Sequence record: OZ195934.1
Length of the DNA: 64,000 nucleotides
Direction: 5' to 3' (one strand)
Shown here: positions 1,847-62,898 of the stretch, piece after piece
Layout: every line of letters starts with the position of its first letter
Numbering within the stretch: the stretch's first letter is position 1
Notes under the pieces: model-generated
Told to the model about the DNA's origin: nothing
Seen by the model: the letters and a program-made list of their open reading frames with translations, nothing else
Database searches by the model: none
Made by a program: the position numbers and the translations under genes

Positions 1847-3862
1847 ATGACTCTTTTATCACCGGGTATCGAAAATAAAGAGATTAACCTTGCAAGTGCT
1901 ATTGGTCGTGCGGCTACGGGTCGTGCAGCAATGGTGGGGAAATTTGAGTGGGGTCCAGCTTATAAGATCACTCAAGTAACTTCAGAATCGGACTTGGTTA
2001 CTATTTTCGGTCGTCCAAACGACTATACCGCAGCATCATTCATGACTGCAAACAACTTTCTAAAGTATGGTAATGACTTGCGCTTAGTTCGTATCTGTGA
2101 CGAAGCAACGGCACAGAACGCAACGGCTCTTTACCATGCAATCGACTACACAATCAGCACGTCAAACGGCTGTGTTGTAGGCGATGAGATTACAATCAAC
2201 TACTCTGGTGTAGGTGAGCTTACAGCTAAAGGTAAAGTTCTAGAAGTAGACGCTGCGAACAACAACGCTGCATCGAAAATCTGGCTACCTAGTGCTGAAA
2301 TCATCGCTGCTGCGAAAGCAGATGGCAACTACCCAAGTGTAGCAACGTTGACAATCACGCCAACGCAGGGTGATATCACAATCACAGAAGTAAGCATTCT
2401 GACTAATGGCTCAGTATACTTCCCGAACATCGACACTGCAACCGATGCACTGACAGCAATCGAAACAGAGGGTGGCGATCTTGAGTACGCAGACCTGATC
2501 GAGAAGCAAGGTTTCAGTCGTTTCGCTGCACGTTACGTTGGTGACTTCGGTGACGCGATTTCAGTTGAAGTGATCAACTACGCTGATTACACGACTGCAT
2601 TTGCATTCGCTGCTGATCATACGCTAGGTGACGTAGAACTACCAATCTACCCAGATGGTGGCACTCGCGATATCAACTTGACAAGCTACTTCGCATTTGG
2701 TCCCGCTAATAGCAACCAATACGCAGTTGTTGTGCGCGTATCTGGCGTTGTTGAAGAAGCGTTCATCGTTTCGACAAGTCGCTCAGACAAAGATGTAAAC
2801 GGTCAATCAATTTTCATCGACGAGTTCTTTGAAAATGGCGGTTCTCAGTACATCACTGCAATTGCAGAGGGCTGGAACAGTGAGTCGGCAGCATACAACT
2901 TCGGTGGTGGCTACGACGCAAACGCAGGCGCAGATGACTGGATGTTCGGTCTAGATATGCTTGCAGACTCAGAAGTGCTTTACACGAACTTGGTAATCGC
3001 GGGTAACGCGGCTGCTGAAGAAGTGTCAATCGCATCAACAGTACAAAAATACGCTATCGACTCAGTTGGTAACGTACGTCAAGACTGTGTTGTTTTCGTT
3101 TCACCACCTGCTGCACACGTTATCAACAAGCGTGCAGATGTTGCAGTAGCAAACATTCAAGGTTGGAGAACGGGTACTAACCCAACAAACGGTCAAGCAG
3201 TGAGCGACAATCTGAACGTAAGCACAACTTACGCAGTGATTGATGGCAACTATAAGTATCAGTATGACAAGTATTCAGATCGCAACAGATGGGTGCCTCT
3301 CGCGGGTGACATCGCGGGTCTGTGTGCTTACACTGATCAAGTGTCTCAACCTTGGATGTCGCCAGCGGGCTTCAATCGTGGTCAAATTAAGGGCGTAAAC
3401 CGTCTAGCACTTGATCTACGTCGTGCGCACCGTGATACGCTGTATCAACTGGGTATCAACCCTGTAGTGGGCTTTGCAGGTCAAGGCTTTGTGCTATACG
3501 GTGATAAGACTGCTACACAGCAATCGAGCGCATTCGACCGCATCAACGTGCGTCGCTTGTTCAACTTGTTGAAAAAAGCAATCTCAGACTCGGCTAAGTA
3601 CCGTCTGTTCGAATTGAATGACGAGTTTACTCGTACATCGTTCAAGTCAGAAATCGACGCATACTTGACGAACATTCAAGATCTTGGTGGCATCTACGAC
3701 TTCCGCGTAGTTTGTGATGAGACGAACAACCCAGGTTCAATTGTAGACCGCAACGAGTTTGTGGCGAGCATTTACGTGAAACCTGCGCGTTCAATCAACT
3801 TCATCACGCTTAACTTCGTTGCAACGTCTACGGACGCTGATTTCGACGAGATTATCGGCTAA
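1847..3862 (+). CDS. gp18: Tail sheath protein (gp18)
   Basis: N-term MTLLSPGIENKEINL and GKFEWGP; C-term WMSPAGFNRG, FDRINVRRLF, IYVKPARSINFITLNFVAT. Confidence 0.98.
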   Translation: MTLLSPGIENKEINLASAIGRAATGRAAMVGKFEWGPAYKITQVTSESDLVTIFGRPNDYTAASFMTANNFLKYGNDLRLVRICDEATAQNATALYHAIDYTISTSNGCVVGDEITINYSGVGELTAKGKVLEVDAANNNAASKIWLPSAEIIAAAKADGNYPSVATLTITPTQGDITITEVSILTNGSVYFPNIDTATDALTAIETEGGDLEYADLIEKQGFSRFAARYVGDFGDAISVEVINYADYTTAFAFAADHTLGDVELPIYPDGGTRDINLTSYFAFGPANSNQYAVVVRVSGVVEEAFIVSTSRSDKDVNGQSIFIDEFFENGGSQYITAIAEGWNSESAAYNFGGGYDANAGADDWMFGLDMLADSEVLYTNLVIAGNAAAEEVSIASTVQKYAIDSVGNVRQDCVVFVSPPAAHVINKRADVAVANIQGWRTGTNPTNGQAVSDNLNVSTTYAVIDGNYKYQYDKYSDRNRWVPLAGDIAGLCAYTDQVSQPWMSPAGFNRGQIKGVNRLALDLRRAHRDTLYQLGINPVVGFAGQGFVLYGDKTATQQSSAFDRINVRRLFNLLKKAISDSAKYRLFELNDEFTRTSFKSEIDAYLTNIQDLGGIYDFRVVCDETNNPGSIVDRNEFVASIYVKPARSINFITLNFVATSTDADFDEIIG

Positions 3863-3872
3863 GAGCAATCAC

Positions 3873-3900
3873 GAGGGGCGTTTTTTAGCCCCTCTAAATA
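3873..3900 (+). promoter_or_regulatory. Hairpin GAGGGGC/GCCCCTC overlapping late-promoter variant TCTAAATA (gp19)
   Basis: 7-bp stem at 3873-3894; TCTAAATA at 3893-3900 upstream of the gp19 RBS. Confidence 0.6.
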
Positions 3901-3916
3901 ATAAGGTATAGAGAAA

Positions 3917-4417
3917 ATGGCACTTAATGTAGACAGCATTAAAAGAGCTTTCGGTAACGGTGATTTCGCTCGTCCAAACTTGTTCGAAGTTGAGATTCCG
4001 TATCTGGGACAGAACTTTAAATTCCAATGTCGCGCTTCAGCAATGCCACCGGGTAGTGTTGAGAAGCTAGAAGTTTCTTATCAAAATCGCAAGTACAACA
4101 TTGCAGGTGATCGAACGTTCGATGACTGGAATGTGACAGTGTACAACGATGAGACGCACGACATTCGCAAAGCTATTTTAGCATGGCAATCGCGTGCAGT
4201 TGGCTTAGGCAAAGATGTGACTGGTGAAACGCCAGACCAATACAAGCGTACTGGTACGATTACTCAACTTGATCGTAACGGCGAACCAACAACATCAGCT
4301 ACAGTATACGGGATTTTCCCGACTATGGTTGGCGAAGTTGCTCTTGATTGGGATTCAAACAATGAAATCCAAACGTTTGAAGTAACATTCAGCTTAGACT
4401 ACTTCACAGTAGAATAA
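3917..4417 (+). CDS. gp19: Tail tube protein (gp19)
   Basis: GDFARPNLFEVEIP, AGDRTFDDWNVTVYND, LDWDSNNEIQTFEVTF. Confidence 0.97.
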   Translation: MALNVDSIKRAFGNGDFARPNLFEVEIPYLGQNFKFQCRASAMPPGSVEKLEVSYQNRKYNIAGDRTFDDWNVTVYNDETHDIRKAILAWQSRAVGLGKDVTGETPDQYKRTGTITQLDRNGEPTTSATVYGIFPTMVGEVALDWDSNNEIQTFEVTFSLDYFTVE

Positions 4418-4422
4418 TGATG

Positions 4423-4443
4423 AGGGGCGTACGCCCCTTTTAT
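4423..4443 (+). terminator. Intrinsic terminator after gp19
   Basis: Palindrome AGGGGCGTACGCCCCT followed by a T-run. Confidence 0.75.
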
Positions 4444-4455
4444 TGAGGTAAAATA

Positions 4456-6003
4456 ATGTTAGAATTTATGAAATTCTGGACGAAAGAAGAAGAACAAGAA
4501 GTATCTGACATTCAGAAGAATCCAGTTCGTTCGTTTTCAGCGCCAGATAACGTAGATGGTGCTAAAGATATTCATACTAACTTACTAGCGCCTCAGATGG
4601 GTAACCAGTTCATTCCGAGTGATATGAACCAAGAGGGCACAGTTCCGATTAAAGAACTGATCTCAGGCTACCGAGCATTAGCAGAATATCATGAAGTCGA
4701 TGATGCGATTCAAGAAATCGTCGATGAAGCTATCGTTTACGAAAACGATAAAGAAGTTGTGTGGTTGAACCTAGACAACACAGATTTTTCAGAAAATATC
4801 AAGACTCGAATCAACGAAGAATTTGACACTGTAGTTTCGTTGCTACATATGCGTAAGCACGGTTATAAGTGGTTCCGTAAATGGTATGTCGATTCACGCA
4901 TTTACTTTCACAAGATTCTTGATAAAGAAGACAATATCATTGAGCTGCGCCCATTAGACCCTATGAAAATGGAGCTAGTGCGTGAGGTTCAAAAGGAAAC
5001 AGTCGATGGCGTTGAAATCGTTAAAGGCACACTAGAATACTACGTGTACCGTCAAGCAGATTACAAGATGCCGAGTTGGATGGACACAAGTTCACGCTCA
5101 CAGACTGCATTCAGAATTCCAAAAGAAGCGATTGTTTTCGCTCATAGTGGTCTTATTCGTGGTTGTTCTGAGACTCAGACAATCATCGGGTATCTAGATC
5201 GCGCTATAAAGCCCGCTAATCAACTTAAAATGCTAGAAGATGCACTTGTTATCTATCGTCTAGCACGTGCCCCTGAGCGTCGCGTATTCTACGTAGACGT
5301 AGGTAACTTGCCTACTCAGAAAGCACAGCAATATGTTAACGGCATCATGCAAAACGTCAAGAACCGTCTTGTATACGACACTAACACGGGTTCAGTGAAG
5401 AACACGACTAACGCTATGTCAATGCTTGAGGACTACTATCTACCGCGTAGAGAGGGTTCAAAAGGTACTGAAGTTAGTACGCTTCCCGGTGGTCAGTCAT
5501 TAGGCGATATTGAAGACGTAATGTACTTCAACCGTAAATTGTACAAAGCAATGCGAATTCCGACTTCACGCGCAGCGTCTGAAGATCAATCGGGTGGTAT
5601 TAACTTTGGTGGTGGTGCAGAAATTTCGCGTGATGAGCTTAAATTCACCAAATTCGTTAAGCGTTTGCAGACTCGTTTCGAAACTGTAATCACTGATCCG
5701 CTTAAACATCAGTTGATCGTTAATAACGTCATCACTGAAGAAGAGTGGGACGCGAATCATGAAAAAATTTATGTTGTATTCAACCAAGATTCGTACTTCG
5801 AAGAATCGAAAGAATTGGAGATTCTAAATAGTCGTATGAACGCAATGCGTGACGTGTCGGAATATGCCGGCAAATATTACAGTCATAAATACATTCAGAA
5901 AAACATTTTACGATTGTCTGACGACCAAATTGAAGCGATGCAAGCAGAGATTGACGAAGAAGACACTAATCCACGATTCCAAGCAGACGACCACGGCTTT
6001 TAG
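4456..6003 (+). CDS. gp20: Portal protein (gp20)
   Basis: KWYVDSRIYFHK, AIKPANQLKMLEDALVIYRLARAPERRVFYVDVGNLP, EDYYLPRREG, ISRDELKF. Confidence 0.98.
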   Translation: MLEFMKFWTKEEEQEVSDIQKNPVRSFSAPDNVDGAKDIHTNLLAPQMGNQFIPSDMNQEGTVPIKELISGYRALAEYHEVDDAIQEIVDEAIVYENDKEVVWLNLDNTDFSENIKTRINEEFDTVVSLLHMRKHGYKWFRKWYVDSRIYFHKILDKEDNIIELRPLDPMKMELVREVQKETVDGVEIVKGTLEYYVYRQADYKMPSWMDTSSRSQTAFRIPKEAIVFAHSGLIRGCSETQTIIGYLDRAIKPANQLKMLEDALVIYRLARAPERRVFYVDVGNLPTQKAQQYVNGIMQNVKNRLVYDTNTGSVKNTTNAMSMLEDYYLPRREGSKGTEVSTLPGGQSLGDIEDVMYFNRKLYKAMRIPTSRAASEDQSGGINFGGGAEISRDELKFTKFVKRLQTRFETVITDPLKHQLIVNNVITEEEWDANHEKIYVVFNQDSYFEESKELEILNSRMNAMRDVSEYAGKYYSHKYIQKNILRLSDDQIEAMQAEIDEEDTNPRFQADDHGF

Positions 6004-6679: not shown

Positions 6680-7315
6680 ATGGAATTATTAATCGAAACT
6701 TGGGGTGTATCTAGCGGTCTCGCTGAATCCCTTGGTGAAAAGCCTCTTGTTGAAGCGAAGCTACCTGCGACGAAAGGTGGCGACTTGTACATCGAGGGCA
6801 TTTTCATGCAATCGAATGTCGTAAACCGTAACGGACGTCGATACCCGAAAAAAGTTATGGAAAATGCTGTATCTAAATACATGCAAGAACAAGTCAACAC
6901 GAATCAAGCGTTGGGCGAATTGAATCACCCTAGCCGTTCGAATGTCGATCCTGCTGAAGCTGCAATTAGAATTACTGAGTTGTGGTGGGATGGTGACAAC
7001 GTAATGGGTAAAGCTATCGTACTAAATACACCGAAGGGACAAATTGTTCGTGGTCTAATCGAAGGCGGTTGGGTACCGGGCGTGAGTTCAAGAGGTCTTG
7101 GTTCAGTTAAGCAAGTTGACGGCATTAACGAAGTGACAGACTTTCGTCTGACAGTTGGAGTTGATGTAGTATGGGGCCCTAGTGCACCAAGTGCTTACGT
7201 TAAACCAGTAACTGAGTCAAATGAAGCTGCTAAAGATGTAAAAACAGAAGAAATTACCGAAAGTAATGACGCTGAATTTGCGAAACTAGCGGAAACGTTA
7301 AAAACTCTCTTATAA
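6680..7315 (+). CDS. gp21: Prohead protease (gp21)
   Basis: LYIEGIFMQSNVVNRNGRRYP, ALGELNHP, PGVSSRGLGS, VDVVWGPSAP; ATG at 6680 preferred over the TTG at 6674. Confidence 0.97.
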   Translation: MELLIETWGVSSGLAESLGEKPLVEAKLPATKGGDLYIEGIFMQSNVVNRNGRRYPKKVMENAVSKYMQEQVNTNQALGELNHPSRSNVDPAEAAIRITELWWDGDNVMGKAIVLNTPKGQIVRGLIEGGWVPGVSSRGLGSVKQVDGINEVTDFRLTVGVDVVWGPSAPSAYVKPVTESNEAAKDVKTEEITESNDAEFAKLAETLKTLL

Positions 7316-7318
7316 ATA
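7311..7318 (+). promoter_or_regulatory. Late promoter TATAAATA (gp22)
   Basis: Exact consensus overlapping the gp21 stop codon. Confidence 0.8.
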
Positions 7319-7347
7319 TTAAAAACATATTTAAGGAATTGAAGAAG

Positions 7348-8190
7348 ATGCAAATCAAAGAGCAACTACTTGAAGCGGTATCGCACGACGATACTAAAAT
7401 CACTACTGCTTTGGACGGCATTTTTGAATCAGTTGAACTTTCCGAAGATGTTCGTAATAAGTTCAGCACTGTTTTCGAAAGTGTTATCAAGACAAAAGCC
7501 GTTGAGCTTGCAGAAGCGCACATCGCTGAAGCTGCTACAAAAGCGGAAGCAGTTATCACAGCACACAAAGAAGAGCTAAACGAAGCCGCTGAAAAATACG
7601 GTGAACATTTAGCTGAATCAATGCAAAACAAACTTGATTCATACCTAGACCACGTTGTTGAAGCTTGGATGAGCGAAAACAAACTAGCGGTTGAAAATGG
7701 TCTGAAAGTATCAATGTTTGACGGTTTGATGGAAGGCATGAAAAATGTTTTCGTTGAAAACAACGTACACTGCCCAGACGAAAAGATTGATATGATCGAA
7801 TCTCTTGAAGAGAACATCACTGATCTTGAATCTCGTCTTGATGTAGTGGTAGTTGAGAACCGTAAGCACAAAGAATACGCTAACTACGTAGAGAAAAACA
7901 TCATCATTGAACGCGTGACAAAAGGCATGGCTGAATCTCAGAAAGAACAAGTTTCTGACCTGGCTGAGTCAATTCGCTTCGATGAGAACTTTGAAGACAA
8001 TCTAAATAGTGTTATCAAGTTCGCTTCTGGTATCAAACTTGCTGAAAAAGAAGATGACGAAGAAGACGACAAAAAACCAGCTCCGAAGAAAGACGAAGAT
8101 GGTGACGACGACGCTGAGAAGAAAGACGACAAAGATATCAATGAATCTGTAACGCCATCAATGGCTGCATATTTGAAAGCTGTCTCGTAA
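7348..8190 (+). CDS. gp22: Prohead core scaffold protein (gp22)
   Basis: Helical acidic protein, FSTVFESVIK, LDSYLDHVVEAWMSENKLAV, ends MAAYLKAVS; lies between gp21 and gp23; ATG start chosen. Confidence 0.95.
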   Translation: MQIKEQLLEAVSHDDTKITTALDGIFESVELSEDVRNKFSTVFESVIKTKAVELAEAHIAEAATKAEAVITAHKEELNEAAEKYGEHLAESMQNKLDSYLDHVVEAWMSENKLAVENGLKVSMFDGLMEGMKNVFVENNVHCPDEKIDMIESLEENITDLESRLDVVVVENRKHKEYANYVEKNIIIERVTKGMAESQKEQVSDLAESIRFDENFEDNLNSVIKFASGIKLAEKEDDEEDDKKPAPKKDEDGDDDAEKKDDKDINESVTPSMAAYLKAVS

Positions 8191-8273: not shown

Positions 8274-9815
8274 ATGAACCTAACTGAAAAATGGAAAGAC
8301 TTGCTTGAGGCAGACGGCGCGGAAATGCCAGAGATTGCAACTGCAACTAAGCAAAAAATCATGTCGAAAATCTTTGAAAACCAAGATCGTGACATCAACC
8401 AAGATCCAATGTATCGTGATCCACAACTTGTAGAAGCTTTCAACGCTGGTCTTAACGAAGCAGTAGTAGATGGCGACCACGGTTCTGTAGCGAACATCGC
8501 AAGCGGTCAAACAACTGGTGCTGTAACAAACATCGGTCCTACTGTAATGGGTATGGTTCGTCGTGCAATCCCTCAACTTATCGCTTTCGATATTGCGGGT
8601 GTTCAACCGATGACTGGTCCAACTAGCCAAGTGTTCACACTTCGTTCAGTTTACGGTAAAGATCCTCTTACTGGTAAAGAAGCATTCCACCCTGTTCATC
8701 AGGCTGACAGCTCTTTCTCTGGTCAAGGTGCTGCATCAACAATCGCTGATCTTCCAACAGACGCGACAGTAGTTTCTACTCCGTACAAAGCGACTGTTAC
8801 AACAGATGGCGGTACTGACGACCTACGTCACTTCCTAGCTCTAACTACAGACGCTGTAGTAGCAAGCTCAGGTGTGATGACTGCTGCTGAATACCAAGCA
8901 CTTGTAATCGGTGGTAAACTGGTTGAAGTTGACGCTGGTATGGCAACAAGCCAAGCAGAACTACAAGAGAACTTCAACGGTTCAAGCGGTAACGAATGGA
9001 ACGAAATGTCATTCCGTATCGACAAGCAAGTTGTTGAAGCGAAATCTCGTCAATTGAAAGCTCAATACTCTATCGAGCTTGCTCAAGATTTACGTGCTGT
9101 ACACGGTCTTGATGCTGACGCTGAACTAAGCGGCATTCTTGCTAACGAAGTTATGGTTGAGCTTAACCGCGAAATCGTTAACCTAGTTAACTCTCAAGCG
9201 CAAATCGGTAAGTCTGGTTGGACTAAAGGTGCAGGCGCTGCGGGTGTATTCGATTTCAGCGATGCAACAGACGTTAAAGGCGCTCGTTGGGCTGGTGAAG
9301 CTTACAAAGCTCTATTGATCCAAATCGAAAAAGAAGCAAACGAAATCGGTCGTCAAACTGGTCGTGGTAACGGTAACTTCATCATTGCATCACGCAACGT
9401 AGTTTCTGCACTTTCAATGACTGATACTCTAGTTGGCCCTGCTGCGCAAGGTCTACAAGATGGCTCTATGAATACTGAAACAAATCAAACTGTTTTCGCT
9501 GGTATTCTAGGCGGTCGCTTCAAAGTGTACATTGACCAGTACGCAGTGAATGACTACTTCACAGTAGGCTTCAAAGGCGGTACTGAAATGGACGCGGGTG
9601 TGTTCTACTCACCGTACGTACCTCTGACTCCACTACGTGGTTCAGACAGCAAAAACTTCCAACCTGTAATTGGTTTCAAAACTCGTTACGGCGTTCAAGT
9701 TAACCCGTTTGCTGATCCAGATGCGACAGTAGACAAAATTGGTTCAGGTGCTCCAGTAGCTGCATCAATGGGTAAAAACTCTTACTTCCGTCGCGTATTC
9801 GTGAGCGGTCTGTAA
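8274..9815 (+). CDS. gp23: Major capsid protein (gp23), KVP40-like
   Basis: MVRRAIPQLIAFDIAGVQPMTGPT, EAKSRQLKAQYSIELAQDLRAVHGLDADAELS, FQPVIGFKTRYG. Confidence 0.99.
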   Translation: MNLTEKWKDLLEADGAEMPEIATATKQKIMSKIFENQDRDINQDPMYRDPQLVEAFNAGLNEAVVDGDHGSVANIASGQTTGAVTNIGPTVMGMVRRAIPQLIAFDIAGVQPMTGPTSQVFTLRSVYGKDPLTGKEAFHPVHQADSSFSGQGAASTIADLPTDATVVSTPYKATVTTDGGTDDLRHFLALTTDAVVASSGVMTAAEYQALVIGGKLVEVDAGMATSQAELQENFNGSSGNEWNEMSFRIDKQVVEAKSRQLKAQYSIELAQDLRAVHGLDADAELSGILANEVMVELNREIVNLVNSQAQIGKSGWTKGAGAAGVFDFSDATDVKGARWAGEAYKALLIQIEKEANEIGRQTGRGNGNFIIASRNVVSALSMTDTLVGPAAQGLQDGSMNTETNQTVFAGILGGRFKVYIDQYAVNDYFTVGFKGGTEMDAGVFYSPYVPLTPLRGSDSKNFQPVIGFKTRYGVQVNPFADPDATVDKIGSGAPVAASMGKNSYFRRVFVSGL

Positions 9816-13527: not shown

Positions 13528-14055
13528 TTGGACGTGAGTCAACTTACTAAACATGCAGATACATTGACGAAAGGCGAACTGGATGCATTCGCAAAAGAAT
13601 ACTACGGTCTAGATCTAGACCGTCGTAAATCAAAAGGCGCGATGACGAAAGCACTTGTCGAGCACGATCAGACAAATGCGCCTGTTAAACCGTTACCTTG
13701 GGAAGAGCTTTTAGTTGAAACGCCAGCCGAAGAAACTGAAGTAACAGAAGAAGTGGCAGGAGCGAAAGCTCCTGCCACTCCGGTTGAAGCTGAACAAGAA
13801 ACAAAAGTTGTTGAGGCGAAAGTCGATGCATCATTTGTACCCGCACGCTTGCCATTCAAGCGCGACGGTGTACCGTTCATGACTGCTTCAGCATCGGTAG
13901 TTGATTTTGTCGCTGAATTGAAATCAGGCAAGGTTAGCTTAGAGCAATGTCCACGCAGCGATGAGAAAGCAGTTAAATCTATTCTGTTTTACATCGAACG
14001 TGATGGTAAGGTGCTTGTACGCGAAACGCGTAACAGTCGCTTTATCGAACTATAA
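13528..14055 (+). CDS. inh: Inhibitor of prohead protease (Inh)
   Basis: N-term ELDAFAKEYYGLDLDRRKSK and C-term FYIERDGKVLVRETRNSRFIEL match the T4 Inh termini. Confidence 0.85.
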   Translation: MDVSQLTKHADTLTKGELDAFAKEYYGLDLDRRKSKGAMTKALVEHDQTNAPVKPLPWEELLVETPAEETEVTEEVAGAKAPATPVEAEQETKVVEAKVDASFVPARLPFKRDGVPFMTASASVVDFVAELKSGKVSLEQCPRSDEKAVKSILFYIERDGKVLVRETRNSRFIEL

Positions 14056-14445: not shown

Positions 14446-15615
14446 CTAAGCAACGAATGCTACACGCTGTACCAATGTTTGTTTTTCACCCTTAAACTCT
14501 TCGTGAGTCTTTACAGTAGCTTTTACAGTGGCTTTCTCGCCCTCTGCTACGTACTCGTCTGCTTTGTTCTCAAGACGCTTAGAGCCAAACCATACAACTA
14601 AGTTGTTTTGCTCGTCGCGGAAGCGGTGAATGTACGTGTCGCCGTAGTAGCCGTCAAGTACGATTACTTTCTCAAGTGTTAGCGTGAATGTTTCGCGCTT
14701 CTTAACAGTACCGATGTACTCAGATTCGCCAAGCTCTTCAACTTTCTTCGCTTTAGCTTTCATGATTTCTTCTTTCTCTACGCCTTTGCTGTATGCAACA
14801 ACTGACGCAGCTAAGAAACCCGCTTGCTTGTACTCGATGTAATCAGGCTTACATGAAGCGATAACGTTGCTCATGAAGTCGTTAGTTGCTTCTTGCTCAC
14901 CAACCCATTTGCGAATTGTTTCTGCACGCTCAGTCATCTTGTCGAAGTCAACTTTAGCTAGAAGCTCATCGCGGTCATTGCGTGCTTCTTTAGTGTTTGC
15001 GTTAAGAAGACGCATTGCTTCAAACTTAGTCTCACCACCTGCGATGTAACGACCGTCGCGCTCAACAACCATGCATACCCAAGTAAGAAGCTCGATTGTA
15101 GTGTAGCAAGGCTTCGCAGAACCACCGCCAACGAATTCGTCACCGAAAGATTCAACTGCTTCGAAGAAAGAAGCTAGAGAGTTAACCGATTTAGTCGGGA
15201 TGAAGTATTTCAAGCAAGAACCGCCAACACGCATTTCTTCGCCGTGTTCGTTTTTGATAACGTATGTAACGTTACGCTGACGATTTGTGTTGCAGTGATC
15301 ACATGTTGTATCACCAAGAAGATGACGATGATTAGTCTCACCATGAGAGCGAACAAGACCCGTTTCGTGGTCAAGTTGAGTCACGAAGTCCCATCCATCA
15401 AACTGTGGGTATTCGCCCGTGATAGTCACGTCGTTGTAGTACACTTTGTACCAACCGTTTACACCTAGCACGTTTTCGTACGTCTCTTTGCCAACTTCAA
15501 GAGTAAGCGCATCAACGCCAATTTTCTTAGCAATCTTGTTAGCAGCTTCAACGCGTGCTGCAAGTTCAGTGATGTGACGAGCGCGAATTCTGTAAGTTGA
15601 GTTGATAGCAGTCAT
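14446..15615 (-). CDS. Conserved phage protein with a Cys motif (CDHC...GGSC) and a C-terminal OB-fold-like domain
   Basis: 389-aa ORF with early promoter and AGAGAGAACATTATG leader; EYIGTVKKRETFTLTL..YGDTYIHRFRD..LVVWF..VKATVKTH. Confidence 0.7.
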   Translation of the reverse strand: MTAINSTYRIRARHITELAARVEAANKIAKKIGVDALTLEVGKETYENVLGVNGWYKVYYNDVTITGEYPQFDGWDFVTQLDHETGLVRSHGETNHRHLLGDTTCDHCNTNRQRNVTYVIKNEHGEEMRVGGSCLKYFIPTKSVNSLASFFEAVESFGDEFVGGGSAKPCYTTIELLTWVCMVVERDGRYIAGGETKFEAMRLLNANTKEARNDRDELLAKVDFDKMTERAETIRKWVGEQEATNDFMSNVIASCKPDYIEYKQAGFLAASVVAYSKGVEKEEIMKAKAKKVEELGESEYIGTVKKRETFTLTLEKVIVLDGYYGDTYIHRFRDEQNNLVVWFGSKRLENKADEYVAEGEKATVKATVKTHEEFKGEKQTLVQRVAFVA

Positions 15616-15726: not shown

Positions 15727-16704
15727 TTATTTTTCTAGTTCGTAGTAGACTGTACCATCGCTCGACATAGAAGTAACTGAGAGATTGTAACCCTCTTGTG
15801 CTCCAAGCTTGCGCATGATTCTAGTGTATAGTGATTTACGCTTCTCGTTACCATCGCCAGTAGCTGTAACAACTTTACGGCAGTTGTATTGATGAGCAAA
15901 CGTAATCGCTTCTTGTGCAACTGTAGCGAATACAGTAAATGCGTTTTCAGAATCAGTGATATCGTAAGTCCATTTGCCGTTCACAGACGCGTGGAAGTGA
16001 ATCTCGACTGTATCAACTGTTATGTTATCTTCCCAATCAAAGTCGATATCATCAGAATCATCGTGTTGAATACCATGAGGCACTAGAACGACCTGATACA
16101 TTTGATTGCCGACTTCGAACAATCCGAATATTGGCTTGCCCTCTTTCGTTGGCGTATTGCCTTTCGGGTACACTACTTTCGCTGCTCGGTCAAGTGACTC
16201 AGTGAGATTGACAGATGAAAGCCAGTCTTGCCAGTTCTTACGACTACCGATTTTTGTAAATGGGATGTCGTCGTGATCGAGCCACTGAATCGAACGGTCG
16301 TATGATTGCGACACGTTAAATCCGTTGTAGTCGTCACCGACCCATAGCCATTTGTGATGCCAGATTTGATTGACTTGTCGAGCTTTCGCGACTTTGCGTT
16401 CTGCAACGTCAACGACAATCATCTTACCAGCCGCAGGTTCTTGTACATGGTCGAACTCAGTTGATTCGTAGAAAGCAATCGTAGACTTCTTGTAATCGAT
16501 TCTAACGACGTTCGGGCAGAAAGTCGGGTTCTCAATCGAAAGAAGTGTGCGTGCTTCTGCTACGCGCTCTTTGAACTCTTCAGGTACGTAATTGATGTGT
16601 AAGTATAATGCACCGCCGATATCTTTACCCACGCCCCATTTGCTTCGTTTAACTGCTGAACCTTTTCGCGTCTTCAGCGTTGCGCGTTCAAAGATTAGAT
16701 TCAT
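15727..16704 (-). CDS. Two-domain late protein: N-terminal domain like the phosphorothioation-associated methyltransferase repeat, C-terminal domain shared with 60274..61134
   Basis: GKDIGGALYLH..FYESTEFDHVQEP..IWHHKWLWVGDDY..KIGSRKNWQDWL; C-domain FEVGNQMY..KWTY..VFATV..KRKSLYTR..GY. Confidence 0.7.
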   Translation of the reverse strand: MNLIFERATLKTRKGSAVKRSKWGVGKDIGGALYLHINYVPEEFKERVAEARTLLSIENPTFCPNVVRIDYKKSTIAFYESTEFDHVQEPAAGKMIVVDVAERKVAKARQVNQIWHHKWLWVGDDYNGFNVSQSYDRSIQWLDHDDIPFTKIGSRKNWQDWLSSVNLTESLDRAAKVVYPKGNTPTKEGKPIFGLFEVGNQMYQVVLVPHGIQHDDSDDIDFDWEDNITVDTVEIHFHASVNGKWTYDITDSENAFTVFATVAQEAITFAHQYNCRKVVTATGDGNEKRKSLYTRIMRKLGAQEGYNLSVTSMSSDGTVYYELEK

Positions 16705-17300
16705 TATCGTCTCGATTGGTCGTTTATAATGTGACGCATCAAGTTAACTGCGTAATCCGTTTGACCGGTCATAGCAGCCGATGCAGCTTTATCGACGTAG
16801 AACGTACTGTCTTCGATCATGTTCAGATGCTTATAGATCTCTCTGAAGTCGTGACGGTCGTATTCTTTATCAGACCAACGCAAAGCACCTGCTTTTTTGT
16901 CGTCGTCGTGAACACGCTTGTACTCATCGATAACACGAATCATTTCCGAAGCTTGCTTCTTCATCATCATGTTGTCCATCTTCAGACGTTTCGCAGCCTT
17001 TGCCACTTCGTCTTGAGGACGGTCGTGCTGTATAGCGTCCATTAGAATGTTCATGCTATGCAGAGTATCAATACCTGCCTTTTCCATAGCTTGTTGTTGT
17101 CGCTGAAGCGTAGAATTGTGCTTACCTAACTCACCCGATGCTGTAGCACTCGCGATAAGACCAGAAAATACACTCCACCAACCGCCTTTCTTCTGTATAC
17201 GCTTCTTAACTTCACCTTTCGAACCGCTAGTAAAGTCTTTGAATTGCGCCCACTTACCAGAAAGTGTTGCTTTTTCACGTTCAGTCAAAAATTCAATCAT
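16704..17300 (-). CDS. Hypothetical helical late protein, possible internal head protein
   Basis: 198-aa ORF, RBS AAGGGG, upstream TCTAAATA; N-term MIEFLTE. Confidence 0.7.
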   Translation of the reverse strand: MIEFLTEREKATLSGKWAQFKDFTSGSKGEVKKRIQKKGGWWSVFSGLIASATASGELGKHNSTLQRQQQAMEKAGIDTLHSMNILMDAIQHDRPQDEVAKAAKRLKMDNMMMKKQASEMIRVIDEYKRVHDDDKKAGALRWSDKEYDRHDFREIYKHLNMIEDSTFYVDKAASAAMTGQTDYAVNLMRHIINDQSRR

Positions 17301-18883: not shown

Positions 18884-19399
18884 CTACCCCAGAACTACGA
18901 ATGAATTGGATAGATTGTCACGAACAAGCAGTTCGCCGCGCAGTGCAACCCAATATGCGATTGTCTGCAACTCGTGAGTATCGCGATTGCCGATTAAGTA
19001 CGCGTGAATGTCATCGTGCTTAACAACTTGGAACAATTCACCCTCATGGCGATACGAGGGCGTCCATTTCGGCTTGAATTCATCTTTGATGACGATTTCC
19101 ACGTCGATTGACTCTACGGGATTGCTGATAACCACCTTTAAATCAACGTCAGTCGCTTCTAGAGTTGTTTCAACGATTGGCGCGTCTGATTCATCGACTA
19201 AATCACATGTCGTCTCTGAGCTGATTACAGACGTGTCTAGATAATCATCAGGAAAGCTAGTGATCTTATCGACGTTAGCCATGATCAATCGAATCGCTGC
19301 TGATTTGGTTAGCGTCTTGTCGTATTCGATGTCAGTATGTTCAAGCTGAAACTCGATGACTTCGCGCTTCGTCTTGCCTTTCAAGTATTCTTCGTTCAT
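18884..19399 (-). CDS. Inh-like paralogue
   Basis: N-term YLKGKTKREVIEF..IEYDKTLTK; C-term FKPKW..LQTIAYWVALRGELLVRDNLSNSFVVL parallels T4 Inh. Confidence 0.65.
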   Translation of the reverse strand: MNEEYLKGKTKREVIEFQLEHTDIEYDKTLTKSAAIRLIMANVDKITSFPDDYLDTSVISSETTCDLVDESDAPIVETTLEATDVDLKVVISNPVESIDVEIVIKDEFKPKWTPSYRHEGELFQVVKHDDIHAYLIGNRDTHELQTIAYWVALRGELLVRDNLSNSFVVLG

Positions 19400-60212: not shown

Positions 60213-60251
60213 AAAAGGGTTGACTTCGGTCAGCCCTTTTTCATATAAATA
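60213..60251 (+). promoter_or_regulatory. Terminator hairpin followed by late promoter TATAAATA
   Basis: GGGTTGAC-TTCG-GTCAGCCC-TTTTTT; TATAAATA at 60244-51. Confidence 0.75.
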
Positions 60252-60273: not shown

Positions 60274-61134
60274 ATGATTATTTTCGAGGCATTTTCGCGC
60301 CCTGTGCCTTATAAATGGGTCAGACCGAGCGAAATTGAATTCACAGTAAACGGTACGAAGTATCGAGCAACGTACAATATCACGTACAGAGACGGCAGCT
60401 CACAAATGTACATCGACTTCCAATGGAATGACGGTGGGCAATGGTCGTACAAGCTGAAGAAGGGCGGAGACCCGAAAGACGCAATGGCTGTATTTGCGAC
60501 TGTACTCGCAGCGGGTGAAGAGAAAGCAAATCAAGAGAAGCCGGATTTCATTACGTTTAGCGCGTTCTCAGATGAAGATGATGCAGACGCACACAAACGA
60601 TTCAGACTGTACAAACGCATGGCTGATCGCTACGCTAAACAACTTGGCTACACGATGCATGTTGACGGTCGCAATTTCATCTTGAAGAACAACAACCCAT
60701 CGACCGTGAGACGTATACCGAATGACGGCATCATGATTGATGACGAACTGACGTACGTTGAAATGCCACGCACGAACGAATTCACATGGGCTACAATGTT
60801 CGAGTGTACTCGTCCGGGTGATTTTGAAATGGTGCGTTTTAAGAATGGCTTTGCTACAATCAAGCGTCAGACTGAAGATAAAGTCGAGATCATGGTTAAA
60901 GCAGGTGGTCAAACGTATGACAATTTAGATTCACCAGAAGTGTGGGACAAGTTGAACGGTGAGTTGTTTGTTACAGCGTCATGGCGCCCAGATGAACCAC
61001 AACCGATGTCAGAGAAAGCATCATTGCTTGAGAATGGTTGGATGATTTTGACTGAGACATCCACCGTGTACAAAGTAGAAAGTGTTGCAGACTTCGAAGC
61101 GATTTGGGGTTACAAATTAGAGTCTATTAGATAG
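60274..61134 (+). CDS. Late protein, probable internal head protein; N-domain shared with 15727..16704
   Basis: Start corrected to 60274 (MIIFEAF); FTVNGTKY..QWSY..VFATV..KRFRLYKRM..LGY. Confidence 0.7.
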   Translation: MIIFEAFSRPVPYKWVRPSEIEFTVNGTKYRATYNITYRDGSSQMYIDFQWNDGGQWSYKLKKGGDPKDAMAVFATVLAAGEEKANQEKPDFITFSAFSDEDDADAHKRFRLYKRMADRYAKQLGYTMHVDGRNFILKNNNPSTVRRIPNDGIMIDDELTYVEMPRTNEFTWATMFECTRPGDFEMVRFKNGFATIKRQTEDKVEIMVKAGGQTYDNLDSPEVWDKLNGELFVTASWRPDEPQPMSEKASLLENGWMILTETSTVYKVESVADFEAIWGYKLESIR

Positions 61135-61135
61135 T

Positions 61136-61165
61136 AAAAAGGGAGCCAATCGGCTCCCTTTTTTT
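61136..61165. terminator. Bidirectional intrinsic terminator
   Basis: AAAAAGGGAGCC-AATC-GGCTCCCTTTTTTT. Confidence 0.9.
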
Positions 61166-62858
61166 ATTGTGCTGCAATTGATTTGCTGAATTTCTCACGC
61201 GTCGTCGCAGGTAGTTCAGGGTTATCTGTACCAAGAAGTAGAATCGCGATGTCTTCAAGTTCAGCCATGCGTTCTTGCTTCATGTGAACACCAATAACGC
61301 TTTCATTGTAAGCGCCTTTGTCGCGCACTGAAAGACGAATGACAGCATGTGAGCCTACGTGATCCATAGTCACAACGTCAGCGTCAAACACAGTATTACG
61401 ATTGATCATGAACTCATTTTCACCTTGTTGACCGTTTCTGCCAGGGATGTAAACTGGAAGACCGTCACTTTCGATGATGAATACAACTTTCATATTCATA
61501 GTACCGAATCCAAGCGTATCAAGCATTTCTTGTTTGCTTGAGTCACGTGATGTCATCACATCAAGCACATTAGCTTCAGCGAATTCAACGGCAATCATCG
61601 GGTCAGTCGATGCGCTCATGTAAGCAGTCGATGCAAACAAGCCAGTCTTCAGAATGCTTCTAACGACGTTAGACGTACATTCCATGCCACGATATAGCAG
61701 AGGAGTAGGTTGAATGTTATGACCCATAACGCCAGCCTCTTCGAATGCAGAGTCGATGTCGTCGATAATTTTAGCTGTTTTCTCTGTGCCTTTACCCGTC
61801 AATAGATGCTGATTCACGTTCCAGTATTGTGCGCCAGTATAACGAGCAATAGAGCCTTGAACTTCAGGCGGAACGCCAGACCATGTTGGGTCTTGTTGAA
61901 GCTGAACTGCTAGTGTGTTGTACTGAGATTCGAATTCACGTGACTTCACAGAAAGCATGTTTCTGACAATCTCGCTAACAGTTCCCTGATCTTGATGCTT
62001 AGTGTTGCGCATAGCAGGTGCCATACGACTAGCAATAGTTTGCAAGTCAATTGGGATATCTAATGTACCAAGCGCGATACGAGCAACGTCAGCCACTTCA
62101 GGCACACTATGATTCGCAGCGCCTTGCAAGCGTTCACGATATACACCGCGAGTTGCAGGGGTTAGAGCAGGCATCACCATTGGCGTGTTCGGAACACGTT
62201 TCGCTGGTTTGTCTTCGATCCATTCAGCTTTCACTTCGTCGTGAAACTCTTCAAATCCCGGTACCATATCAGCCGTAACGATAATCGAGCGTGCAGTCGC
62301 GATGTCTGGTTCTTTAGACATTTGAGCAGCTAGAATATTGATAGTCTTTTCTTCAGACTCAAGTAGCTTATCGGTATTGTATCCCGGTTTGTTGATAACG
62401 AAGAAGCTGAAATCTTCAGCCATTTCATGATCGCCAACGTTTAGAATCTTAGTTGTTTCACAGCCGTAGCGTAGTTTCTTGAATAGCGTTTTGATACGCA
62501 TATCGAACATCTTGCCACTGCCTTTCTTTTGTACGCGCATTGATACAGCGTTTGCACGAACTTTCAGCATGAATTCTTGAACAAGTTTAACCAACGTTTC
62601 TTGGAACTTTTGTTGATCACCCATATCACGAATAGTTAATCCGCCTTTTTTACCGCGCATTGCAGTAACAGTACAGAACCAAGCGCGTTTAGTACGGTCG
62701 CCTAGCCCCGATTTTGTTTTACTTGTAAACGTGACAACGACATCTTTGGTCTCACCAGCCATATCGATGACAAAGTAACGATTGACTTTGGTCGAGCGAG
62801 CCGGGTAGTAGTTATAAGTTGAAGTTGCTGTCTCATTTAATTCTTGAAATCCAATCAT
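61164..62858 (-). CDS. alt: Alt-like NAD:protein ADP-ribosyltransferase (capsid-delivered)
   Basis: IARYT..Y..VN..L, LYRG, AYMSAS, GENEF (R-S-E ART motif); N-term MIGFQELNE; late promoter. Confidence 0.85.
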   Translation of the reverse strand: MIGFQELNETATSTYNYYPARSTKVNRYFVIDMAGETKDVVVTFTSKTKSGLGDRTKRAWFCTVTAMRGKKGGLTIRDMGDQQKFQETLVKLVQEFMLKVRANAVSMRVQKKGSGKMFDMRIKTLFKKLRYGCETTKILNVGDHEMAEDFSFFVINKPGYNTDKLLESEEKTINILAAQMSKEPDIATARSIIVTADMVPGFEEFHDEVKAEWIEDKPAKRVPNTPMVMPALTPATRGVYRERLQGAANHSVPEVADVARIALGTLDIPIDLQTIASRMAPAMRNTKHQDQGTVSEIVRNMLSVKSREFESQYNTLAVQLQQDPTWSGVPPEVQGSIARYTGAQYWNVNQHLLTGKGTEKTAKIIDDIDSAFEEAGVMGHNIQPTPLLYRGMECTSNVVRSILKTGLFASTAYMSASTDPMIAVEFAEANVLDVMTSRDSSKQEMLDTLGFGTMNMKVVFIIESDGLPVYIPGRNGQQGENEFMINRNTVFDADVVTMDHVGSHAVIRLSVRDKGAYNESVIGVHMKQERMAELEDIAILLLGTDNPELPATTREKFSKSIAAQ

Positions 62859-62890: not shown

Positions 62891-62898
62891 TATTTATG
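62891..62898 (-). promoter_or_regulatory. Late-promoter variant CATAAATA (alt)
   Basis: 32 nt upstream of the ATG. Confidence 0.55.

Follow-up and report, generated by a model that had tools for sequence, protein, structure and literature searches.

The 64,000-nucleotide stretch of sequence record OZ195934.1 analysed here (hereafter the window) belongs to a KVP40-like, T4-type myovirus of Vibrio and carries two well-separated genes whose products share a domain of ~140 amino acids (aa). Gene A (60274..61134, plus strand; VPHD483_0093, homologue of KVP40.0058), taken from the open reading frame (ORF) list, encodes a 286-aa protein that is annotated as hypothetical and falls into phrog_6387 (9.3e-89); its domain is N-terminal, and its C-terminal half is uncharacterised. 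Gene B (15727..16704, minus strand; VPHD483_0018) encodes a 325-aa member of phrog_16075 (2.3e-120) in which 164 uncharacterised residues precede the domain. Gene A is flanked by a DNA ligase gene and a gene for an Alt-like ADP-ribosyltransferase (ART; 61164..62858, minus strand; 564 aa; Pfam ADPrib_exo_Tox, 1.8e-5; phrog_802, 1.1e-57), and the A/Alt pair corresponds to KVP40.0058/KVP40.0059. B sits within a minus-strand cluster downstream of the head genes. The sequence around the locus is 100% identical to that of Vibrio phages D483, D525, K575 and 6E35.1a, all of which have Vibrio crassostreae as host, and the coordinates are the same in D483; genomes of the relatives are ~253 kb. Genome-wide searches were run on the D483 record OZ195934.1 (254 kb), in which three paralogues outside the window are referred to below as C, D and E.

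The shared domain and its six copies

That the N-terminus of A and the C-terminal half of B are copies of one domain had been suggested in the original prediction, and independent profiles bear this out. BLASTP aligns aa 47-130 of A (60274-61131) with aa 235-310 of B (15730-16704, minus strand) at 30% identity (E 1e-5). The B-family profile phrog_16075 matches A at aa 5-126 (1.9e-11), the A-family profile phrog_6387 matches B at aa 166-312 (4.9e-7), and both proteins are matched by phrog_27801, a stand-alone family of 149 aa that consists of the domain alone. The cross-matches between these independent PHROG profiles delimit the shared unit as aa 1-140 of A (60274..60693, plus strand) and aa 165-325 of B (15730..16212, minus strand, also from the A/B alignment). 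Judged from the sequences, we regard the homology of A and B as confirmed, real and well above chance. An accident of chance or composition, with no real domain behind it, might be read into a pairwise identity of only 30% over 84 residues, and we give it next to no credence: the profile matches are reciprocal, an exhaustive profile search gathers 2,071 representative proteins at E<=1e-3, a number that falls to 249 at E<=1e-10, the predicted fold is confident, and its structural matches to viral homologues reach a template-modelling score (TM) of 0.8. This explanation was rejected on those grounds.

Two profiles were used to count copies in the D483 genome. An alignment of A- and B-type domains recovered four (A, at 6.8e-71, with B, C and D), and a hidden Markov model (HMM) of 90 domain sequences, run in six frames, recovered six, with no further match in 254 kb. 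The E-values from the latter were 2.9e-39 for A, 3.9e-28 for B, 1.1e-36 for C (288 aa; 95514-96380), 1.5e-33 for D (about 237 aa; about 135000-135712), 6.2e-7 for E (562 aa; 86505-88193) and 3.8e-3 for Alt. The domain is C-terminal in B and N-terminal in the other five. C is a paralogue of A over its full length; D, E and Alt have only the domain in common with the rest. D has probably been annotated with a start that lies 17 codons too far upstream, a likelier one being MKFEQFMES.

The sixth and last of these matches is a remote copy at the Alt N-terminus (aa 4-134; 62457..62849, minus strand; matched part 62517-62846), where the original prediction had suspected a distant third copy. Neither A nor B matched Alt by BLASTP, a shallow profile of 11 sequences gave 0.26% in hhalign, the 90-sequence profile gave 0.16% against the T4 Alt sequence alone, at an unrelated region, and the T4 genome was matched neither by the window's Alt protein nor by the HMM. 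Diverse alignments were needed to establish the link. When 17 Alt N-termini of T4, Aeromonas and KVP40 type were pooled, hhalign returned 95.9% (E 5.6e-9) over 125 columns. Taken by group, the match was weak for the T4 type alone (32%, E 5e-4, with a core of 68 columns), 65% for the Aeromonas type and 27% for the KVP40 type (19.8%, E 1e-3, in a second run), in the same register throughout. The HHalign comparison that had been named as a check on the three-copy proposal thus gave a strong match for pooled Alt and a weak one for KVP40-type Alt by itself. Foldseek, run with the AlphaFold2 (AF2) model of the domain against viral models, found the Alt proteins of Aeromonas phage phiAS5 (E 8e-5), Escherichia phage HY03 and Acinetobacter phage Henu6 (E 8e-5 to 2e-3, TM 0.58-0.64), and the Alt N-terminus is the sole HMM match in the phiAS5 genome. 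Profiles and models together make it likely that the Alt N-terminus is homologous to the domain, a case that is strong when Alt proteins are taken as a class and weak when this phage's Alt stands by itself.

The ART catalytic region of the window's Alt occupies aa 282-501 (61356..62015, minus strand; phrog_802 aa 282-501, PF03496 aa 332-498). The Alt ART profile has no match among the 150 best family representatives, and the ART catalytic domain is found only in the Alt gene; as far as catalysis goes, A and B are therefore no paralogues of Alt. The T4 annotation traces alt.-1/alt.-2 to an old duplication of the beginning of alt. This region (7066-7451 of the T4 stretch examined) is a decayed second copy of the Alt N-terminus that starts MELITELFD and is split by stops, so duplication of the domain has occurred in T4 also.

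The invariant glutamate, the head protease and the virion

All 90 aligned copies of the domain begin with a glutamate, and the residue two positions before it is L in 45, I in 23, V in 13 and M in 5 (86/90); the residues that follow are [ASL]-[FL]-[DN]-x-P-[YA]. In what follows a slash marks the position after this glutamate. In A it is E5 (codon 60286-60288; MIIFE/AFSRP) and in B the internal E169 (codon 16198-16200; VNLTE/SLDR), and both proteins carry the family motif (IFE/AFSRP and LTE/SLDRA). In Alt it is E9 of L7-N8-E9 (codon 62832-62834), where LNE/TATST keeps the LxE part only. The first five residues of the AF2 model have predicted local distance difference test (pLDDT) values <50, and the invariance of a residue in so flexible a tail suggests that it serves for something other than packing.

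The Alt protein of T4 is known to be packaged, processed by gp21 and injected. It starts MELITE/LFDED, and hhalign places the glutamate of ITE-6 on the glutamate of the family. The gp21 protease is reported to cut T4 Alt at this very site, with loss of 6 residues, and again at LTE-619, with loss of 63 C-terminal residues (PMC5694885; GenBank X15811 note). A T4 gp21-type prohead protease is encoded in the window (6680..7315, plus strand; Peptidase_S77, PF03420, 3.6e-97, and annotated as such). The original prediction had drawn attention to short N-terminal leaders ending in glutamate, and that of A (MIIFE) ends exactly at the invariant residue. Taken alone such a leader carries little information, because 21 of the 67 ORFs in the window (31%) have [LIVM]xE within their 12 N-terminal residues.

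The propeptide of the major capsid protein (MCP; 8274-8573, plus strand) reads ...QLVE/AFNAGLNE/AVVDGDHG. Read by eye and unaligned, its GLNE-62/AVVDGDHG lies about where the 65-residue propeptide of T4 gp23 ends. Just ahead of this likely maturation site, LVEAFN copies the LxE-AF-[DN] start of the domain family, a likeness that may be accidental or may reflect an element recognised in both by the protease or the core.

Virion data bearing on the family come from the Agrobacterium jumbo phage Atu_ph07, which has five domain copies in three proteins (AUZ94865, AUZ95241 and AUZ95242). Their computed masses of 87.07, 31.68 and 33.72 kDa match gp53, gp482 and gp483 of the published virion table, obtained by electrospray ionization tandem mass spectrometry; the gp numbers were mapped by molecular mass because the numbering of the paper departs from the order of coding sequences (CDSs) in GenBank, where gp482 and gp483 are the 429th and 430th CDS and AUZ94865, gp53, lies at 3485-5821 of the stretch examined. 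The three proteins were detected in virions with 31, 9 and 16 unique peptides and 37-56% coverage, and they peak in gel slices 9, 12 and 12, respectively (PMC6102473 Table S5). Unprocessed proteins found only in slice 9 are of 18-24 kDa, and those found only in slice 12 are of 13-16 kDa except one of 27 kDa (PMC6102473 Table S5). The copies in these proteins are preceded by LSE/LFDT, LTE/LFDT and LNE/LFDT, and Atu_ph07 encodes a gp21 homologue (PMC6102473). The slice positions fit cutting at LxE before each copy, which would leave products mostly of about single-domain size. gp53 lies within a run of virion proteins detected by mass spectrometry, from gp40 to gp69.

The family at large

Among the best 150 representatives, about a third consist of the domain alone or the domain plus one extra region, and the others, which are up to 2,215 aa long, have the domain 2-5 times in tandem. 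Genomic contexts were phage-like in all four members examined, two of which lie on marine contigs of 210-266 kb that carry lysis, replication and nucleotide-metabolism genes. Elsewhere in the family its fusion partners include ART, zeta-toxin-like, deaminase, ParB/Srx and GNAT domains (Pfam; structural matches), and some long arrays hold true GNAT or DUF192 domains between the copies (Pfam). On a jumbo-phage-like Tara metagenome contig of 210 kb, a 1,408-aa protein with four domain copies and a GNAT domain is encoded near DnaJ and a ClpB-like AAA+ chaperone.

The link to a named family runs through Pfam DUF6934 (PF22028), whose curated gathering score is 27 bits for the whole protein. D exceeds this threshold at 32.5 bits; A (13.3), B (17.7) and C (17.1 bits) fall below it over the same region of the profile. 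Of the multi-copy homologues, whose scores range over 22-163 bits, P0096 (22.1 bits) is the only one that stays below the threshold. Because A and B are themselves below it, they are tied to DUF6934 by transitive homology. Their shared segment appears from sequence comparison to belong to a large, uncharacterised and mostly phage-borne family, which may be called the Alt N-terminal domain, linked to DUF6934. Pfam gives DUF6934 no function, and in the literature searched the name appears only in passing in one unrelated paper.

The original prediction had portrayed a dispersed module onto which different effector domains are grafted. The module is indeed mobile and its partners varied; the grafting does not describe the many members that are the domain only or arrays without an effector. 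For the same reason, the domain may itself be cargo rather than a handle. The partner regions in the window, namely A's C-terminal half and B's N-terminal half, matched only their own PHROG families of unknown function in searches of Pfam and PHROG, and an ESM Atlas search with the N-terminal region of B was uninformative (scores <=0.67).

Packaging and the alternatives

We think the chances a little better than even that the domain is a head-internal module, built into the prohead, cut after its conserved glutamate by the S77 protease, retained, and injected in the manner of Alt. Proteins bearing it would first be incorporated into the prohead core. The protease would then cut after the glutamate, removing a propeptide of 5-12 residues from A and Alt and, in B, separating the N-terminal region from the domain. 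The products would be kept in the head and delivered into the cell along with the DNA, following the example of T4 Alt. Cleavage in this phage is proposed here by analogy with ITE-6 of T4 Alt, and residence in its virion by analogy with T4 Alt and with gp53, gp482 and gp483 of Atu_ph07. In a broader form that we put forward tentatively, as possible and somewhat short of probable, the folded domain with its [LIVM]xE leader, and not a 10-aa peptide only, would be the conserved capsid-incorporation determinant of T4-like and jumbo myoviruses, and the LxE-delimited arrays would be polyproteins diced by the prohead protease into abundant single-domain head proteins.

Several observations weigh against packaging. 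The Atu_ph07 stock was purified with polyethylene glycol and replication proteins were also present in it, so some of the detections may be carry-over, and sizes judged from gel slices are coarse. A literature search for virion proteome or cleavage data on KVP40-type phages found none. Conservation of the LxEAFDxPY motif could be for folding or function rather than for cleavage. The window's own Alt matches the family weakly when taken alone (E 0.004; hhalign 20-27%), and the AF2 model of its aa 1-175 has a pLDDT of 50, too poor for a fold search, so that it was used for the order of strands and helices only. Finally, B, C and D are without late promoters, and C, D and E lie beside nucleotide-metabolism genes.

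Expression context does not speak with one voice, in part against the original prediction, which had assigned late promoters to A, B and Alt. An exact T4-type late promoter box, TATAAATA, lies 22 nucleotides before the ATG of A (60244..60251, plus strand), right after a terminator-like GC-rich hairpin and T-run that was read directly from the sequence and closes the ligase gene just 5' of the A promoter (60217..60241, plus strand). A sequence scan found a near-consensus box with one mismatch, CATAAATA, upstream of Alt (62891..62898, minus strand). For B, no late-promoter-like motif was found on its strand in 14-20.5 kb, and none was found upstream of C and D. The window has 8 exact TATAAATA boxes on the plus strand, with 1.85 expected by chance, and 0 on the minus strand; the exact boxes are thus confined to the plus strand, although it is the minus strand that carries Alt and the B cluster. 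C, D and E belong to same-strand stretches in which most genes are unnamed, next to those for dCMP deaminase, thymidine kinase (tk) and polynucleotide kinase (pnk). Directly upstream of B is a 198-aa ORF that starts MIEFLTE (16704..17300, minus strand; phrog_16422), and B is probably co-transcribed and translationally coupled with it, because its stop overlaps the B start.

Other features of the B region may be noted. The B-containing cluster lies between two genes with the annotation prohead protease inhibitor (Inh-like), at 13642-14055 (plus strand) and 18884-19399 (minus strand). A 389-aa ORF directly downstream of B (14446-15615, minus strand; phrog_2319) has ~100 C-terminal residues in common with four other PHROG families of unknown function, and on sequence grounds these look like another mobile module.

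The predicted fold bears on a different explanation. The AF2 model of A 1-145 has a pLDDT of 83 and the order b-b-b-b-a-b-a-b-b, which matches the GNAT core from b2 to b7; it begins at the b2 equivalent. Most of the top 50 structural matches are to GNATs (Z 6.5-7.7), the acetyltransferase anti-CRISPR AcrVA5 among them, and a DNase-I-like subdomain of RNase E matches at Z 9.1. Against the PDB, the top Foldseek match is Naa50 (best E 0.012), with TM values to solved structures <0.5; a PDB sequence search with the domain profile gave no match. Across the 90-copy alignment, TGxGDA stands before helix 3 and SRxxLYxR...GY, with an invariant Tyr, in helix 4, and we take these segments to look like GNAT motifs A and B. 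The predicted fold is thus GNAT-like, as the original prediction had expected, with middling scores: a GNAT-like alpha/beta sandwich of ~140 aa is a fair description of the model, and a sequence-model match and a complete fold, by which membership of the GNATs would be judged, were not found.

On this footing the domain might instead be a cytoplasmic module for host takeover or anti-defence that is never packaged, either a GNAT-derived enzyme or a binding or decoy domain; LxEAFDxPY would then be a structural element or active site, and the copy in Alt a target-binding domain. The structural matches and motif likeness just described, the bona fide GNAT domains inside some arrays, and the position of C, D and E beside nucleotide-metabolism genes, with C and D lacking a late promoter, are what such a module would lead one to expect. 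We consider this, the main alternative to packaging, rather unlikely. Pfam gave no GNAT match for A-D, the TM to solved GNATs is below 0.5, and Z-scores of 7-8 are, according to guidance for such searches, typical for models without a true match. The b1-a1-a2 arm of GNATs is absent from the model, the A/B alignment shows no Gly-rich loop in B, and up to five tandem copies per protein would be unusual for an enzyme. An unpackaged module also leaves unexplained why an invariant glutamate in a low-confidence tail coincides with a proven protease site of T4 Alt, and why domain proteins were detected in Atu_ph07 virions.

Packaging could also take a form in which the domain is a removable targeting handle only, docking its partners to the scaffold core and then being cut off and lost or left inert. 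The position of the motif between domain and partner in B and in the Atu_ph07 proteins, where a cut would separate the two, would suit such a handle, as would the parallel with T4, whose capsid targeting sequence is taken off once targeting is done. Mature T4 Alt nevertheless retains the domain, its losses being limited to 6 residues at the N-terminus and 63 at the C-terminus; in many members the domain stands by itself or in arrays, with no partner to deliver; and material of about single-domain size is abundant in Atu_ph07 virions, hence retained rather than expelled. We judge a handle of this kind to be improbable.

If the domain is a retained, head-internal module, its closest known parallel is T4 Alt, in which the same domain, by profile and fold, stands directly after a short propeptide ending [LI]-T-E that gp21 cuts. 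A and B differ from it in having no ART domain, and B in having its domain at the C-terminus; for the N-terminal part of Alt, our literature search found no published function. IPI, IPII and IPIII of T4, internal proteins that are non-essential and fast-evolving cargo injected with the DNA, likewise lose an N-terminal propeptide ending (L/I)xE to gp21, and their mature parts differ behind a shared targeting element. That element is a 10-aa peptide, in contrast to the folded 140-aa domain here, whose leader can be as short as 5 aa, and the domain proteins have no sequence similarity to the T4 internal proteins. Polyvalent and MuF-fused head cargo comprises multi-domain phage proteins that bring together ART, GNAT, kinase-like and other domains and for which packaging and injection have been proposed (Iyer et al., 2017; PMC5512222). 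The arrays here consist for the most part of one repeated domain between protease motifs and look in this respect more polyprotein-like, and a term search of the polyvalent-protein literature (including PMC5512222) did not find the domain.

Capsid targeting and processing by gp21 are known, classical T4 biology. What appears from sequence to be new is a folded domain that is common to Alt and at least 5 other proteins of one phage, is spread in tandem arrays elsewhere, and has a protease-site motif in every copy; the literature searched contains no description of such a shared domain with a built-in protease-site motif.

Injected head proteins are the first phage weapons to act in the cell, and those of T4, such as Alt and IPI, target the host's transcription and restriction. 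Predicting them is difficult, since they evolve fast and in T4 have only a 10-residue tag in common. In its broader, more tentative form the packaging proposal would account for the packaging of T4 Alt behind a propeptide of no more than six residues, and the domain would be a sequence signature that predicts the injected proteome of thousands of uncultured phages. If the packaging proposal as such is true, DUF6934 and the N-terminal third of Alt, so far unexplained, would both gain a role. The domain would also suggest a carrier module for loading foreign proteins into phage heads, and it would allow a practical listing of candidate injected proteins in T4-like and jumbo phages.

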